From: Chlorokybus atmophyticus
Taxonomy: Eukaryota; Plantae; Mesostigma and Chlorokybus algae
Length of the DNA stretch: 64,000 nucleotides
Reading direction: 5' to 3'
Assembly (NCBI GenBank): GCA_009103225.1
Contig: RHPI01000560.1
Coordinates: 231,465 to 295,464 of the forward strand
Made by a program: the position numbers and the translations under genes. The notes below the pieces were generated by a model. That model was not told where the DNA came from. It searched no databases and saw nothing but the letters and a program-made list of their open reading frames with translations. Below, one piece after another: positions 8,363-47,185 of this stretch (within the stretch, counting starts at the first letter, position 1; each line of letters starts with the position of its first letter).

Positions 8363-10852
8363 TTACACCACTCTCAGCAGGTTGTTCTCATGCCCGTTGT
8401 TGCTGACAACTTCCCTACGTGGATCAGCAACCCAGTTGCCATCCACAATGAACTTCGTCTGCAGCGGTAGTCCAGCACAATTTTCAGGCCCCAAAGCATT
8501 AAGAGCGGTACAAACCAAGAGTGTTTGAAGTAAAACGTGCATAGAGATAAACCACCATGCAAAGGCTGGGTTGCGTTGCTGCAAGTGGCAAACAGCCTGA
8601 AACAGTCGATGTATCAGCAACATACCTCATAGCAGCCTGGGTACAAACGCAGTTCTGCAACAAAGAGCCTCTCTCCGCGCGCACCACTTGCAGAATGGTC
8701 AGGTTCCAGCTCAATGTAATGTGTCCAGCCATCAAAGGCACCCGAGAGCAGCACTTGGTTCGCAACACCCCACCATTCAACGCGCACCTGAGCAGAACAC
8801 GGTGACGTGGCAGTTTATTTATTTTAAAGACAGCGGATATGGTGCTCTTCAGTATCCCAGGCATGACATTGCATCGTCTACCGCTTACCTTCCTTAATTG
8901 AGAAAGCGCAGCTTCTGCTGCGGACAAGCGAGCGTCTTGCTCTTGCAACTGACGCCGTGCAGCTGACAATTCAGCGACAGCGTTTGCCCGAAACTTGTTG
9001 AGTGAACCCTGTCAGTCGGTAAAACACATAGGTTAAACCCCAAAATCTCCCCAACACGATACTGACAATGTTGATGCTGCTCAACTCTGGACATAGTACC
9101 TGAGCTTGCTGCAATGCTGTTCTCAATGCTCCCAGCTCTGCCTCACGGGCTGCAAGAATGTCATTTACGCGCGCAATCTCCTGCTGCATTGTGCCGTTGT
9201 CGCCCCAAAGACTTTGGTCTCCCTGCTTTTCCATGCAATTATGACTTTGGACTATTCACTGTAGCACACGTTACTGCAAACGAATACTCACATGCTGCAT
9301 GACCTGCGCTGTGCTTGAGGCTACTACTACTGCTGTCTGCTGCTCCTCTTCACCAACCTTCTCCCCTCGCCGCCTTCTCTCCAACAACCTGATCAAACCA
9401 CCACTGGTCATATGCGATGAATCCCAATGAGAATGCACATGCATATGATAGTGTGAATGAAGCAAAAAGTGCACAACATGTCAACATAGCTGCGCTGCAT
9501 CAACCTGCGGAGCTGTTGCCCTTTCATTGCAGCTGTGTTGTCAGTCTCTTCAACCGGCGCGTCAAACACGAAGCCCTGTTCCCGCGCGTGAAGCTCCTAC
9601 CAACACCATGACAAAGAGGAGTTGATACATTGGATGAGTCACATGGGAACATGACAACTCACCTGCTCTCGCATCTGCTTTAGTCGCTGCTGAAGGCTAT
9701 CCGTTGATGTGTCCCTCTCTTCATCCCAAGGTTGTGGGCTTGACCCAGTCAACTCTTCATCTTGGTCGCCAATGCAAGGTGGCATGGCCAAGCTTGAGCT
9801 TACTGGCGGCCAATCAGAGTCATCCCAGCTGGGCGCAGCAGCTGTTGATGCGTAGTCTGCACTTGATGTTGTGCGCCCGTTGCCAGAAGAATCACGGTCG
9901 GGAAGCACCTGAGGTTGCGTCGCATCTGCAGCCAGCATGGCATTATCAATGATTTGTTACATGCATTGTGCATTGGAAGGGAACAGTAGGCTGCTACAAC
10001 CTGCTGCTGGATTCGAGCCGCCAGCATTCAACCCTCTGCCTGTGCGCACAAATAGAGCAGCTCGTTCTTGAAGAGACAGTACTGGATTGCTGTCATTTGT
10101 TTTGGAATCGTCCTGACTGTTCAGCGCAGCGTCTCATATTTCAGCGGGCTCGTGAACATGCAAATGCAGAAACCAATACAGTGCAATGGTCTCGATGACA
10201 ATAAAAACAAGGGTAAACGCTGAGGTTGCCCTGCACTTGTTGCTGATGGACAGTATCACAAAGCATTGCACAACGAGATCTAAGCGCTCACTTTCTGGGA
10301 GAAGGTCCTGAAGGGTTTTGCGCCTGGCACAGCACCAAACGACTGCTCCTGGCTGTGATGCTGGGCGTCCTGCGTGCAACTCCACCATCAATGTGGCATG
10401 CATGGCTCAGGATTCAAGTGGCGTACCGCACAATCAGCTCACACTGCAGCACAAATGTAGCATGCAAGGTCTAGTGTTGTGCCGTGCATAAATCCTAGGA
10501 AGGTCTGATTGCACAGTACAGCATGGCTTGCATGCGCAAGTGCAACCACTGAAGATAAAACAGTACAGCGGATGCTTCAAACATGCAACATTTTGCAAAT
10601 TGCATACGTAAGAGCAATAAAAACCAACAGACATGCAGAAGCAATGTACCTGTTGCCTGCTCGCATTGAGCCCAGGCCATGCTCACGGAGGCTCGCAGCA
10701 GCAGGCAGCGGCGGCAGCGAGCACGCCTGCTGCTGCTGGGCGGCAACAACCCGAGCAGAAAAGTACTGCTGATGCAATGCAGCTGACGCTGAGCTCGCCG
10801 CGCTCCTCCCTGACGCCCCGGCCACCGCCGCCGCCGGCCCAACCGCCGCCAT
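8363..10852 (-). CDS. PTST1: PROTEIN TARGETING TO STARCH 1-like (transit peptide, coiled coil, C-terminal CBM48), multi-exon
   Basis: Spliced C-terminus VRVEWWGVANQVLLSGAFDGWTHYIEL...LRLYPGCYE|TKFIVDGNWVADP...GHENNLLRVV* is a CBM48/AMPK-beta-type domain. Coiled-coil exons MQQEIARVNDILAAREAELGALR and QLQEQDARLSAAEAALSQLRK. Ala/Ser-rich N-terminus from ATG 10852. Internal exon boundaries are approximate. Confidence 0.75.
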
Positions 10853-40754: not shown

Positions 40755-41054
40755 GACCCACCAGCAGGCCGCCAACGACAACAACCTCACCGCAGCCAGG
40801 CCAAAGCCCAGCCCTAATTTTCAAACGATTAACTGGCAAGTCCACCGCCGTCAACAGTCAAGCAGCTTGCATTTCCCCCTGCTCATTTCAACCGTGACGT
40901 TCCCGTGCCGTTAAACAAGCTAGGCACATGCACACACACAAGTCTTTGTCATTGTGCCTGGCTAAGCTTTGGTGTGCCCTGCTTGTCGCTGGCGGGCGGG
41001 GCGGCGGGGTGACTGGGAGGGTGAAGCGGAGGCGCAACAGATGTAGGGACGCTC

Positions 41055-44000
41055 ATGGCGGGGATAGTGACAGCGGTGGGTCCGCCTAGGACAGTGGCCA
41101 CGAGGGCGAGCTCTGCGAGAAAGCAGAGCAGCAATGGCGGCATGCAGCCTGTGGCGGCAGCTGCAGGATGGCAGAGCGCAGCTCAAGGCAAGCAGCAAGT
41201 AGTGGACCTGACGGACGTCATGCCTCCACCGCCGCCAGTGACGCTGCGTGTGCCACGGGTAAGTTTAAGCGAGCGGTGCCTCCAGCTCGCAGCAGCCTGT
41301 GTTCGCCGGTGTGACTGCGGGTGCATGTACAAGACAATGCAGGCAATTTCAAGCTGCCAAGTGCTTGCTAACGTCCAGCAAACCTTTCCGTCACATTGTG
41401 CAAGAATGTGAAGAAGCCAAAGACAGGATACTGCTTGAACTTGTGCACTTCTTGCACAATGCATGTTGCATCGACTTATGCGTAAAACCAAAAAGTGTCT
41501 GCAGCGTAGCGTTGAACCTTACATTGAGACAAGAAACCTACGTCAACCTAAGTCATGAACTGTGACTTTGTCAGTCACTACCCCTTGTAGACTGTGAGAG
41601 CTCGCATCAGGTTGCACCAGGCAATGCAAGCTTCGGCTTCATGTCCTTCCCAATGCAACCTTTTGGAAACAGCATAAGTTCAGACTGCTGCTTAGTTTGC
41701 TCTCCACCAACGGAGGCCACTTTGTATTGCATGCATCACCGACACGAGCTTCACAACACTTCCGTTATCATCCAGACGTACAGTTGCACAGATGCATTGG
41801 CGCTCAGCGTTGTGTGTTGGAACCATGCGTGTGTGAGTTGGGTTCTGTACGCTGACTCATCCACGAAGGTTGCTATGGCAGCTTCAAGCCTGTGTGTGCG
41901 CATTGTTTCAAGTCTTTTAGCTGTGATTTGTTTCTGTATATAGCGATCGTCTATTGGTGGCGACTGTGGGGCAGGCAAAAGCCCCATATCTCAGAGCCCT
42001 GGAGCCTCTCCCTTTCCACAGATGTCCAGGCAGCTTTGCGTGCAGCAGAAGTCTTGCATGTTCGACGATTGAGGGGTTTGCTGTTGCAGACAAACGGTGC
42101 AGCTGGCATGCACATGGCAACGCCAGCCAAGCGCAAACTCCCAATAGAACAAGACCTTGCTGCGGACGACCGCGCGGCTGCTCCCACGCCGAGCAGCTGG
42201 TAGAACACACAACATGCAAGCACAACATGCATCTTGTGGCGCACATGCACTCAGCTAACATGCCTGTGTGCAGCCAATGCACGTGCAGGTGCTATGCCTG
42301 GCACGGCAAGTATGCCGCCTGCTCAGCCTGGAACATCCAAATGGCGTTTATCCCAAGAGATGAGCTGCTAGATCTCCAAGTCAAGTGTAGGTGAGTACAA
42401 GGTGTGTCACATGTGTGAAAGAGCTTGTCGCATCAGCGTTGCAAGTTTACTGCAGTCCCGAATCTGAATGATCTGCAGCGAAGCTGTGAGCGTTTTTGCG
42501 CATGCTGTGGCTGGCAGCATCGCAAAGAGGCGAAACACAAGTGGATATCAGTTATTCCAGGTAAGTGTTTTTGCTACTGATGTAGTGGTCGTGAGTAAAA
42601 CACTAGTTAATAGTATGCGTATCCTCTGCAGATTGCCGGAGCACGCGTAGGTCCCGATGGGCAGACTTGCATTGCTACTCCAACAGGTTCATGGGTGAGT
42701 GTTGGATTGCCATGCCGGAATCTGTGGCTGTATCCACAAATCCAATTTGTCAGGTTCCTATTACGGAAACTTCCGCACAAGCTGTGTCCGCTGAAGAACT
42801 GGCCATGCTTCGGCATGAGATCGCAGATGGCAGGCATCCCTTGCTAAAGCTGGTATGGTTACCGCTATGTGTGCATGGTTGCTGTGCTTTGCCTGTCTGA
42901 TCCTGCTGCTCTGGCTGCTAACTTGGACTTGCAGAAAACCATGACGGACTCCAGAGCTGCACGAACGCGCTACAAAGATGAGAAACTTCACAAGGTCGAG
43001 TTGATGCAAGGGAGGTTGGCTTTGATGCTCTGTTATTGAAAGTGTTTGTATTGACAGGAGAATCTTCGCAAACTGCTCGCGAGCGCTAACAAGCAAGAAC
43101 AGTTTGGCAACGACAAAAAGGTTGGCCACATACCTTTTACGACAATAACTCCATGCAGCACTGCCAAGCTACTAGTGCAAGTCTGTCACAGTTGTCTCGT
43201 GCCATTGCACACGCAGCAAGTGCCTTGCATCCCAGCATGCCATACTTGCACCATTCTGATGCGTGAGTTATCTGTCTTATCTGTCTTTACCTCGTGGCAG
43301 GCTCAGGAGTTGTTGCACGAGTACCGAATGATAACGGACCGGGGGCTGTTTGAACGCGTCCCTCCTGAGCTGCAGGCTTTGGAAGACATGCCACCTTTTC
43401 AAGCCACACAGGATGTGCTTGGAGCACAGGATCAACCAGGGCCAGCTGGTTGCAACCTTACAGGTGGTGACACCTCTGATCAGATGGGGCAACCAAGTCC
43501 CAGTGCTGTGCGGACGGGTGGTGGCTGGGGGACAAACAAGCCCGCAACAGCTTGGGGGGCAAAGCCAGCAAGCAATGCAGACACAACAGGCAATGCCGAG
43601 GTGCCAGCAACGAAGAGCGGGTGGGGTGCAATCACCAATAATGCAAGCAGTGCGGAGGTGCCAGCAGCCAAAAGTGGATGGGGAACAGCCAACAAAGGAA
43701 GTGGTTGGGGAGGTGCAGGCACTCCAGGTAGGGGCACATAGGGTGCTGCCCATTGCACTAGTATTGCACTGATATTGCTGAATCTGGGAGTGAACACCAC
43801 AGTAGAGAAATGGTTTCCGCAGTTAAGGGATCCGGATGGGGCGCGCAGCAAACAGGCACTGCCGAGACGCCAACAACCAAGAGCGGGTGGGGTACAACCA
43901 ACAATGGCGGTTGGGGAGGCGCAGGCAGTTCAGGTAGGGGCACATGGAATGCTGTCGTTGCTGCTAGTATTGCTGCATCTGGGAGTACGCACGCAGTGAC

Positions 44001-46439
44001 AAGACTGTTTGTGCAGTAAAGGATTTCAGACGGGGTACGCAGCAAACAGGCACATGGGGCGCTTCCAATAATGGCAACGCGAGAGGTGGCTCTGAGAGCC
44101 TCTGCCAAACTGGAGCGAATACAACACCTCTTGGGCAACGCAAGCCTTCAGGTGCAGCTGTAATGCATGCATCACAACAGTTGTGTTACTCTCACTCCTA
44201 ACACCTTTTACACCTGTGACATGTCACCAGATAACGCTGTGTGCATGCTCCTTGAAGTTTTATGGTTCTGATGTGTTCAGGCGGAGATGCTGGCCCTAGC
44301 ACTTGCTTCAAGTGCAACCAGGAAGGGCATATATCTAAGGACTGCCCTTCAAGTGCAGACGGAGGCTCCGGCACATGCTTCAAGTGCAACGAACCAGGCC
44401 ATACATCTCGTGATTGCCCGCATGCAGACGTTGTCTGCCGCAGATGCAAACAGGAAGGGCACAAAGGCAACGAGTGCCCTAACCAGACCGGACCCACCTG
44501 CTACAACTGTCAGGTCAGGCAGCAACATGTTAGAACTGCTGTCACCGTGCCAACACAAGTTCAGCTAAGTCGTTTAGAACATGTGCATGTTGCGACTCAA
44601 CTGCTGCTAGCTGATGGTCTTGGTATGGTCAGGAAACTGGGCATGTGTCTAAAGACTGCACGCAACCAAAGGCAGGACGACCCTGCTACAATTGTCAGGT
44701 CAGGCAACCTGTTATTGTTGCACTCACCTACAAAAGTTCAGCTTGGTCACAACATATGCATTCTGTAATCTGCCTGCTGCTAGCTGATGGTCTTGGTGTA
44801 TGCAGGAAACTGGACATGTGTCCAAAGATTGCTCGCAACCAAGGCGCGGAACAACGTGCTACAACTGTCAGGTCAAGCAACCTATTACATTTGCATTTGA
44901 TGCTGGAACCATGCCTACACAAGTTCATTTACAACATCACACGACTGCTAGCTGATGGTCTTGCTATATGCAGGAAAGTGGGCATATGACAAAGGATTGC
45001 ACGCAACCACGGGCCGGGCCAACCTGTTTCAATTGTCAGGTCGTGTCATCGTTGTATTCACCATCCCAACAAGAGTTCGGGTCTAAATTGTGCATTGTAA
45101 CTTGTCTGCCGCCAGCTGATGGTCTTGCTATCCGCAGGAAGTTGGTCATTTGTCCAAAGGCTGCACGCAACCAAAGAGAAAACGTCAAAACACTGGTGTG
45201 GCACTGCGCTGATACCCGCGTTGCAATGGCATCGTTGTTGCATGCTGCTACCGCACTCAGTGCATCAGTGACCACACAACCAATGCCTGTTGTTCGCAGA
45301 CGCTTCCAGCGGCTGGGACAAAAACCTAACAAACAATGGTGATGCCTGCAACTTCCAGCCTGTATGGGGTCAAGCAACCAACGGACGCAGTTCAGGTTGG
45401 TGCAGCAGCGTTGCCAGTAAACAGCTGTCGCCCAGTGTTGCATGTGCAGTTGCTGCATCTCAGCCAGTGGCAAGTCTTGTTGCTGTGGCTCCGTGACATG
45501 CGAACATCTATCATTGTCTTTGCAGCAGGTACTACTGGCTGGGGAGGCGGGCAGTGGTCTAAAGCACAACCCGGTGAAGGAGCCAGCAAAGGCCCGACAA
45601 AGGGTTGGGGCTCATTCAGTAATAAACCAAACGCTGGTGAAACAGGTGAAGCAGCTCCCACTGCTGGCACAAGCAATGGCTGGGCGCGACCGAAATGGGG
45701 GCAGAGCAAAGCCAGTACAGACTCTGCTGGACAGATCGGCAGCGGTTGGGGTGCCATCAGCAAAGGCGGTACGTCTAATGAAGGAAACGATGATACGGGA
45801 AACAGTGGCAACAAGCAGGAGCCTTCTGCTCCAGCACAACCCGACGGAGGCCCGAGAAAGGGTTGGGGCTCACTTAGCAATGACGCAAATATCGGTCCAA
45901 TTGGTGGACCCACTGATGAAACAAGCAATGGCTGGGCGCGACCCAAATGGGGGCAAGGCAAACCCAGCAAAGACTCTGCTGGACACAACCGCAGCGGATG
46001 GGATGCCATCCGCAAAGGTGATGCACAGTCCAACAAAGAAAACAGTGGTTCTGGGAACAGCAACAAGCAGGAGCATTCTGCTCCTGGATCGGACAGCACT
46101 GAGGTTGTCAGCATAACACAAACTGAAGTCTGCGATACTGGTTGCAAAAGCAACGGGAACAGCACACCAAAGCCTAATGCATCTGATCGCGGATGGGGTG
46201 CTGGAGGCGAGGACAACTCTTCCGTGCCTGCGGATGACACTGGCGAAGCTGGCGCTGATCTGGCACAACCCGAGCAGGATAACGATGCACTTGACACCCC
46301 GCAACAGGATCAAAGGGACACGCATAGCGCTGGTTGCGAACAGAATGCCAATGGTTGGAGCAAACCAGCTGCGAGTGGATGGGGTGCTGGAAAGAGCAAT
46401 GGTTGGGGCAACAAGGCCTCAGGAGGTGGCTGGAAGTAA
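41055..46439 (+). CDS. NERD-like Plus3-domain protein with WG/GW repeat regions and a 7x CCHC zinc-knuckle array; 5' exon structure uncertain
   Basis: Spliced exons 42288-43400 read YAACSAWNIQMAFIPRDELLDL...FAHAVAGSIAKRR...YQLFQ|IAG...WVPITETSAQAVSAEELAMLRHEIADGRHPLL...ENLRKLL, matching the plant Plus3 domain and following helices. Then WG-rich exons (43300-44151), seven CX2CX4HX4C knuckles (44300-45160) and a WG-rich last exon to the stop at 46437-46439. Confidence 0.8.
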
Positions 46440-47185
46440 GCAGGCACATAACGTTGGAATGATGCACTCTTGCGTAATTGGCGATAACAGTCCTCCTGCT
46501 GCCCAGCTGGGTGAGCCATGGTCTTGGCTTCTTCCGGGCGCTTCTTCGTATGCAACTGATCAACCAAAGCTGCATCCAGACTGAGAACTCTCCGAAATGA
46601 AGGCGTGCACGGCATAGTGCGAGCTGACTGACGGGGCGCGGAGGCGGCCCCAGTCTCAGCATATCAACACATATATGTATATACTTAGCACCGTTGATGG
46701 TTGTTTGCAGAGTGCCTTGATGTATAACACATGAGCCTGCTGTACAGTTAGACAGATTACCGTCCGTGCATGTTCAACCCTAACACGTGCTGGTGTTGTT
46801 GGTGCCCTGCGGGCAGGTTTGTGCTATCTCTTGCATGCGCGGGGTGGGGGTGGGGGGGGTCATATAATTTATCTGTGTATATAAAGCTCCAAAATTGTTG
46901 TGTTGGCATGCTAGTTGGCCAGGGCAATGACCGTTTGCAACATAACACACTGCCAAGCACGACTAACCCCAGCACATGTGGGCAGGTGATGGCAACTAAC
47001 ATGTGTGCATGCATGTCTAACGGGTTAGGCAAGATAGTGGTAGTGCCGTAATGTAGAATGTAGTGTACAAAAGATGCAAGGCGGGTTTCATGCATGCAAG
47101 GCACACCGCATTCATCACATACATTGCCGTTTCGCATTGTATGTACATGCAGCCAGTACATCACCCACACACTCTAGCATACAAC

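Follow-up and report, generated by a model that had tools for sequence, protein, structure and literature searches.

A Chlorokybus gene for a candidate Argonaute-hook scaffold with seven CCHC zinc knuckles and a probable Plus3-like domain

Gene structure and public annotation

The stretch of 64,000 nucleotides (nt) analyzed here is taken from the alga Chlorokybus atmophyticus (contig RHPI01000560.1 of assembly GCA_009103225.1, positions 231,465 to 295,464) and is referred to below as the window, in whose coordinates all positions are given. On its forward strand lies one expressed nuclear gene, transcribed as one mRNA, whose coding sequence (41055-46439, 2,970 nt, with ATG at 41055 and TAA at 46439) specifies a protein of 989 amino acids (aa). 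The product combines two regions rich in tryptophans adjoining glycine (GW/WG regions) with an array of seven CCHC zinc knuckles and, toward its N terminus, a domain that probably represents a very divergent version of the Plus3 domain. A first-pass annotation, made from the DNA letters alone, had proposed an Argonaute-binding platform with exactly these coding limits.

Transcript evidence was drawn from public sequencing runs aligned to positions 40900 to 46800 of the window after hand splicing at GT..AG sites. One run (X1) yielded a single spliced contig of 3,388 nt that matches the window with 0 mismatches over 18 exons and skips 17 introns, all of them GT..AG. Fifteen of the 17 exon joints are seen directly in the alignment of this contig, and the remaining 2 are fixed because the lengths of the 5' untranslated region (UTR), the coding sequence, and the 3' UTR of the model (42 + 2,970 + 376 nt) sum to exactly the 3,388 nt of the contig. 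A contig of 2,254 nt from a second, independent study (X2) has identical joints across the 3' half of the gene. The two runs were only presumed to be RNA; since the contig lacks all 17 introns, its source must be spliced RNA. Upstream of the ATG, at 41022-41024, lies a TGA in the same frame, and the 989-aa open reading frame (ORF) is therefore complete. A one-codon upstream ORF (ATG TAG, 41041-41046) is also present in the 5' UTR, 9 nt upstream of the start codon.

We regard both the anatomy of the gene (Table 1) and its expression as established. The coding limits given by the first-pass annotation, whose model had been left for comparison with RNA, are those of the X1 transcript. The six small exons that it had spliced together (exons 3-8) are joined as proposed, and the peptides that it quoted (YAAC, WNIQMAFIPR, YQLFQIAG, which crosses the exon 4/5 joint, and ITETSAQAVSAEE) are all present in the product. 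It had also considered that the exons of its Plus3 domain and those of the GW and CCHC segments might belong to separate transcripts; both sets lie in one mRNA.

Table 1. Features of the Chlorokybus gene and its product in window coordinates
Feature	Position	Strand	Remarks
5' UTR (contig extent)	41013..41054	+	42 nt, transcript contig
Exon 1, coding part (aa 1-68)	41055..41258	+	exon 41013-41258; Ala/Pro-rich; no domain found
Intron 1	41259..42089	+	831 nt, longest intron
Exon 2 (aa 69-105)	42090..42199	+	basic AKRKLP patch
Exon 3	42274..42390	+	117 nt
Exon 4	42479..42560	+	82 nt
Exon 5	42632..42694	+	63 nt
Exon 6	42754..42852	+	99 nt
Exon 7	42935..42994	+	60 nt
Exon 8	43058..43120	+	63 nt
Exon 9	43301..43727	+	
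Exon 10	43823..43933	+	
Exon 11	44017..44151	+	
Exon 12	44281..44513	+	
Exon 13	44633..44698	+	
Exon 14	44806..44871	+	
Exon 15	44974..45039	+	
Exon 16	45138..45195	+	
Exon 17	45300..45395	+	
Exon 18	45526 onward	+	coding to 46439
3' UTR (contig extent)	46440..46815	+	376 nt
Plus3-like domain (aa 117-225; probable)	42308..42852	+	exons 3-6
Helical extension (aa 226 to about 290)	42935..43372	+	exons 7, 8, start of 9
GW/WG region I (aa 342-459)	43526..44057	+	9 W, all adjoining G; exons 9-11
Seven CCHC knuckles (aa 499-643)	44304..45164	+	exons 12-16
GW/WG region II (aa 659-988)	45314..46436	+	17 W, 16 adjoining G; exons 17-18

In public annotation the gene is represented by two faulty fragments, Chrsp127S01882 and Chrsp127S01883 (window extents 42468-43039 and 44423-46439, respectively). 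The former (119 aa) is limited to exons 4-7, begins falsely in intron 3, and reads on into intron 7. The latter (EukProt/JGI, 427 aa), which is the sole match to exon 18 among 1.84 billion representative proteins, starts out of frame within exon 12, omits exon 16, and contains no knuckle. The database searches run yielded no public model with exons 1-3 or 8-11, and a profile built from exon 9 and Chrsp127S01883 matched Chrsp127S01883 only. The exon-junction pattern was not found in metagenome contigs, and the look-alikes of exons 3 and 6 in the ESM Atlas were noise. Because the annotation holds the protein only as fragments, proteome-based surveys of Argonaute (AGO) hooks could not have found it; the corrected exon coordinates make it directly testable.

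GW/WG regions and zinc knuckles

Analysis of the 989-aa product revealed that 26 of its 30 tryptophans adjoin a glycine, close to the figure of about 24 WG/GW motifs given by the first-pass annotation. Of these 26, 9 belong to aa 342-459 and 16 to aa 659-988, and a single one stands at aa 39. With a glycine content of 14%, the binomial tail for this adjacency is 6e-12, and when each region was shuffled separately, 0 of 5,000 shuffles attained the observed GW/WG count in either. Gly, Ser, Thr, Asn, and Ala are abundant in both regions, whose hydrophobic fraction is only 0.05-0.07. They also bear marks of internal duplication: the ends of exons 9 and 10, together with the introns that follow them, are duplicates (97 of 125 nt identical), and in region II aa 708-788 repeat as aa 794-872 (52 of 82 positions identical). 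GW/WG motifs embedded in disordered sequence of small and polar residues are the published signature of AGO hooks, for which the criterion of one survey was at least three motifs with a Wsearch score of at least 6 (Cermak et al. 2024). In the Chlorokybus protein, 25 GW/WG tryptophans lie in two disordered regions where small and polar residues abound and hydrophobic ones are scarce. The two regions thus have the composition of AGO hooks and may bind Argonaute proteins.

The GW/WG regions flank, as had been claimed, an array of seven knuckles, each of which conforms exactly to the pattern C-x2-C-x4-H-x4-C, with a spacing of 20-24 aa; the first-pass count is borne out by these patterns, and the Pfam family zf-CCHC (PF00098) matches exon 12 (E 1.5e-22, 79 bits). 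No tryptophan occurs inside the array, and a KRKR patch (aa 647-650) follows it. Among solved chains, the closest to the knuckles are Air2, which is the best match, retroviral nucleocapsids, and TUT7, all of which bind RNA. We conclude that the knuckles are genuine and predict that they bind RNA. Exons 13-16 and the introns upstream of them form a tandem series in which a unit of about 170 nt is repeated at a mean column identity of 74%; Tandem Repeats Finder detected none of the exon-intron duplications. Introns 12-15 (window 44514-45195) are mutually homologous and share a near-invariant stretch, GCTAGCTGATGGTCTTG. It ends about 10 nt before the acceptor and probably represents a branch-point and pyrimidine-tract signal that was duplicated together with every knuckle exon.

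Seven tandem knuckles at this spacing, with the TRAMP subunit Air2 as their best solved match, are also what might be expected of a multiknuckle nucleic-acid chaperone of the CNBP/Air2 type, which would have no Argonaute partner and would use its Gly/Trp-rich tails for condensates or other protein contacts. CNBP has seven knuckles, and the W motifs of GW182 also recruit CCR4-NOT. The intrinsic disorder of the GW regions is compatible with such a function, and alternative roles for AGO hooks have been noted (Cermak et al. 2024). However, the 25 tryptophans are almost all in GW/WG motifs within polar Gly/Ser/Asn-rich sequence, a pattern by which AGO hooks are defined, and they avoid the knuckle array itself. 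The likeness to CNBP and Air2, which are tandem arrays of classical CCHC knuckles, is generic to knuckles, and those proteins possess neither GW regions nor a Plus3-like domain. We judge a chaperone of this kind to be decidedly unlikely.

The Plus3-like domain

Upstream of the first GW/WG region, aa 117-225 are likely to form a very divergent homolog of the Plus3 domain of plant NERD/ZMP (ZC3H19/44) proteins. The comparison set comprised 138 real angiosperm ZC3H19/44 fragments, with PF03126 present in most of the longer ones; the bait for fetching plant Plus3 sequences was 86% identical to real proteins, and only fetched proteins were used. The stretch of human RTF1 that was used is 100% identical to PDB 3U1U. 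In Smith-Waterman alignments of aa 100-270 with the plant fragments, the N-terminal half of the domain always fell on aa 117/118-174 (z 3.3-8.6, 400 shuffles), and one C-terminal plant fragment fell on aa 193-218 (z 4.8). A hidden Markov model (HMM) of the plant subfamily (189 positions) was built after trimming of retained-intron junk, and earlier HMMs from raw fragments were discarded. It matched the protein with 7.8 bits (E 1.3e-4 for a single target) in two colinear pieces, with profile positions 2-46 on aa 117-165 and positions 91-171 on aa 193-273. In the controls, 0 of 5,000 shuffles reached this score (maximum, 6.2 bits), and the reversed sequence scored -0.2.

MAFFT aligned the domain end to end with plant Plus3 domains at 20-35% identity, with matches at the signature positions YAA, NI, the arginine of the first helix, GS..+R, Y.L.Q..G, S.Q..S.EE, and LR..I..G. 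In alignments that are themselves weak, R133 falls on R366 of human RTF1 and on an invariant plant arginine, whereas K160, followed by R161 and R162, falls on the arginine of the FVRI motif. The helical extension that follows the domain likewise aligns weakly with a conserved region after Plus3 in plant NERD/ZMP proteins. A phase 0 intron after L225 agrees, in alignment column as well as in phase, with the plant phase 0 intron after ...RLTV; we estimate the chance of one such shared position (one of three plant introns) to be about 0.04. When the plant rows were supplied as the alignment, AlphaFold returned a model with a predicted local distance difference test (pLDDT) score of 79.8 and a predicted template modeling (pTM) score of 0.72, and the 15 best PDB matches of this model were all RTF1 Plus3 domains (TM score of 0.66).

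Two side observations concern this region. Metagenome contigs with plant ZC3H19-type Plus3 exons resemble host-plant DNA; the domain in them has three conserved introns, which lie after VQVV(G) (phase 1), SNQEFTE (phase 0), and RLTV (phase 0). Directly before the Plus3-like domain of the Chlorokybus protein is a cysteine-rich stretch, C-x-C-x-C-x-C ... H ... C (42274-42325, aa 105-121), which matched no family and could be a small metal-binding element.

Several results weigh against the Plus3 assignment and the interpretation built upon it. With the spliced domain as the query (105 aa, aa 121-225, checked against a scripted splice), Pfam Plus-3 (PF03126; gathering score, 27 bits) gave no match at E≤10, nor did it with Chrsp127S01882, whereas a plant Plus3 protein run as a positive control scored 87.9 bits. 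A phmmer search of the PDB with the spliced domain found no Plus3, the AlphaFold model from the single sequence had a pLDDT of 38 with only noise among its Foldseek matches, and hhalign against the plant profile gave an E value of 0.018 with a probability of 2.6%. The confident AlphaFold model is circular, because the supplied plant alignment dictates the fold. Six-frame decoy peptides of the 64-kb window reach 6.1-8.1 bits, in some comparisons their Smith-Waterman scores are as high as that of the real protein or higher, and at the level of the window the HMM match has an E value of only about 0.3. That match is significant only because the region had been named beforehand, by a reader who picked it for its resemblance to Plus3. 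The plant profile itself is drawn from closely related angiosperm fragments only, and of the three positions at which introns interrupt the plant domain, two are not shared by this gene. At the other end of the protein, the GW tail encoded by exon 18 has no detectable homolog among the 1.84 billion representatives. Pfam searches with the individual exon pieces of the domain yielded nothing, which is uninformative for pieces of 21-38 aa. A word-index search and a metagenome scan for diverse Plus3 domains recovered angiosperm sequences only, with no bryophyte or charophyte bridge. The top decoy with the plant Plus3 profile (6.1-8.1 bits) is a 90-aa open frame on the minus strand at 10137-10406, and its match is probably due to chance.

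The Plus3 domain of the first-pass annotation is weakly supported by a low-scoring colinear match to the plant profile, one shared intron position, and one conserved arginine but not by Pfam, PDB phmmer, or single-sequence AlphaFold. The failure of every general test for Plus3, together with window decoys that score about as high as the domain, would accord with a GW182- or CnjB-like Argonaute partner in which the GW regions and knuckles form an AGO/RNA scaffold, cytoplasmic or nuclear, while the N-terminal domain has a lineage-specific fold with no relation to Plus3, which it would resemble by chance. Argonaute-binding GW proteins are indeed known from Tetrahymena (Wag1 and CnjB). Such a protein would leave unaccounted for the colinear similarity over three signature blocks of the plant family, an HMM score reached by 0 of 5,000 shuffles, the common position and phase of the intron, and the retention of the key arginine; further, no other Pfam family matches aa 121-225 at E≤10. 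We consider an Argonaute partner lacking Plus3 to be rather unlikely, and our preference for a Plus3 homolog results from weighing colinearity, intron, arginine, and the precedent of NERD against the negative tests.

The first-pass annotation had tentatively placed SWIB-like remnants before the Plus3 domain, and these did not survive scrutiny. The two peptides concerned, ELVHFLHN (about 41431-41460) and DVQAAL (42021-42038), lie in intron 1 and are not part of the transcript, and the ORFs that hold them have no Pfam match at E≤10. Nine real plant SWIB domains were combined into a profile that, when scanned over all six-frame peptides of the window, scored 5.1 and 4.1 bits within the gene against a window maximum of 6.3 bits. 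The in-gene look-alikes are a 20-aa stretch just before exon 3 (42218-42283, intron 2; 5.1 bits) and PYIETRNLRQPK (41517-41552, intron 1; 4.1 bits). We rejected them as SWIB relics, since their scores lie within the background of the window and colinear in-gene pairs rank no better than pairs elsewhere. In the transcript, no SWIB/MDM2 domain was found upstream of the Plus3-like domain. PHD, GYF, and CCCH domains had no Pfam match in exons 1, 2, 3, and 9, with exon 7 covered only within Chrsp127S01882 and exon 8 not scanned separately.

The weak SWIB-like peptides in introns 1 and 2, together with knuckle exons that are young tandem duplicates, might be taken as traces of decay, that is, of a NERD/ZMP-like gene that lost its SWIB domain, was fused to retroelement Gag knuckles, and is transcribed without a selected function. 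Such a chimera is very unlikely, because the 2,970-nt ORF is intact across 17 precisely spliced introns between a defined start and stop. In addition, the transcript was assembled in two independent studies, the C, C, H, and C ligands are kept in all copies of the knuckle, and the Pfam scan showed no retroelement domain besides the knuckles.

Relationship to known systems and a proposed role in silencing

We place the Chlorokybus protein, as a candidate, among the AGO-hook proteins, nearest to NERD, and not in a new category. Arabidopsis NERD (At2g16485, ZC3H19) combines Plus3 with GW motifs (Cermak et al. 2024; ZMP paper). The ancestral architecture of this family comprises a zinc finger, SWIB, Plus-3, and GYF, and its Plus-3 domain may contact the transcription bubble (ZMP paper). 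The resemblance of the Chlorokybus protein to NERD/ZMP (PHD-SWIB/MDM2-Plus-3-GYF) lies in its Plus3-like domain, its GW hook, its streptophyte lineage, and the one phase 0 intron at the end of the domain. In contrast to NERD/ZMP, PHD, SWIB, GYF, and CCCH domains were not detected in it; in their place are seven CCHC knuckles and two GW regions, and its similarity to the plant Plus3 domain is too weak for Pfam. NERD is traced to a much later origin, in the ancestor of the Zygnematophyceae and land plants (Cermak et al. 2024). A full-text literature search found no description of Plus3, GW repeats, and CCHC zinc knuckles in one protein, in agreement with the first-pass view of the architecture as undescribed.

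The Plus3 domain of RTF1/Prf1 binds phosphorylated SPT5, single-stranded DNA (ssDNA), and RNA on overlapping surfaces, and R366 of human RTF1 is needed for binding to both phospho-SPT5 and nucleic acids. The alignment-guided model of the Chlorokybus domain superposes on RTF1 Plus3 (PDB 3U1U and 4L1U; TM score of 0.66), although that model is driven by its alignment, and R366 corresponds to R133 of the Chlorokybus protein. The latter differs in having no detectable direct sequence similarity to RTF1 Plus3, a shorter beta-hairpin region, and neither the HMD nor the Paf1C-binding region of RTF1. The plant proteins SPT6L, NRPE1, and SPT5L each carry a long disordered GW/WG platform on a module of the transcription machinery, an arrangement that the Chlorokybus protein appears to share; unlike them, it has a different structured partner domain and a knuckle array predicted to bind RNA, and its own association with a polymerase is putative. 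CnjB of Tetrahymena carries CCHC knuckles. Together with Wag1 it is a GW-repeat partner of the Argonaute Twi1p, and both act with nascent transcripts. These are GW-repeat proteins like that of Chlorokybus, but the likeness is one by description, to an unrelated ciliate whose proteins have no Plus3-like domain.

Comparative surveys provide the silencing context. Chlorokybus and Mesostigma have no NRPD1/E1 and no DRM, while their SPT6L already has an AGO hook (Cermak et al. 2024). A second survey reports two algal-type AGOs, an algal-type DCL, and an RDR-like gene in Chlorokybus and finds no NRPD1/E1 in streptophyte algae. Both published surveys are thus consistent with the earlier suggestion that this lineage lacks a full Pol IV/V pathway.

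On the basis of the above observations, we lean slightly toward viewing the 989-aa product as a modular scaffold consisting of a disordered N terminus, a small globular domain with a helical extension that is probably Plus3-like, GW region I, seven knuckles, and the longer GW region II. In this scaffold, the GW/WG tryptophans would dock into the W-binding pockets of the two Chlorokybus Argonautes (Chrsp23S03751 and Chrsp6S07414), as in other AGO-hook proteins, and the knuckles would hold single-stranded RNA. The Plus3-like domain would bring the assembly to the transcribing polymerase or nascent RNA, and its surface, including R133, might bind the phosphorylated C-terminal repeat of SPT5, ssDNA, and RNA by analogy with RTF1. 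The basic AKRKLP and KRKR patches hint at nuclear import. As a result, the protein may gather complexes of AGO and small RNA on nascent transcripts of Pol II, and the tethering of such complexes to Pol II is a reasonable hypothesis. With respect to its origin, the protein appears to be a relative or a rearranged form of the NERD/ZMP family, specific to its lineage and without PHD, SWIB, and GYF, in which a knuckle array was gained and then expanded by tandem duplication of exons together with their introns.

A broader evolutionary scenario can be conceived, which we offer as speculative and unlikely as it stands. Here, a Plus3-type reader of Pol II elongation would already have been fused to an AGO hook and knuckles in the earliest-diverging streptophytes, before the emergence of Pol IV/V and DRM, and Pol II cotranscriptional silencing guided by small RNAs, via SPT5 and nascent RNA, would be ancestral to the NERD-type and RNA-directed DNA methylation pathways.

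Chlorokybus lies at the base of the streptophytes, with no NRPD1/NRPE1 and no DRM reported, yet it possesses Argonautes and an AGO-hook SPT6L. A second, much larger candidate AGO-hook protein in this alga, with knuckles predicted to bind RNA and possibly a Plus3 domain of the NERD/ZMP type, would bear on the question of how transcription and small RNAs first became linked in the plant lineage, and its significance would rise sharply if the Plus3 identity, AGO binding, and association with Pol II prove true.

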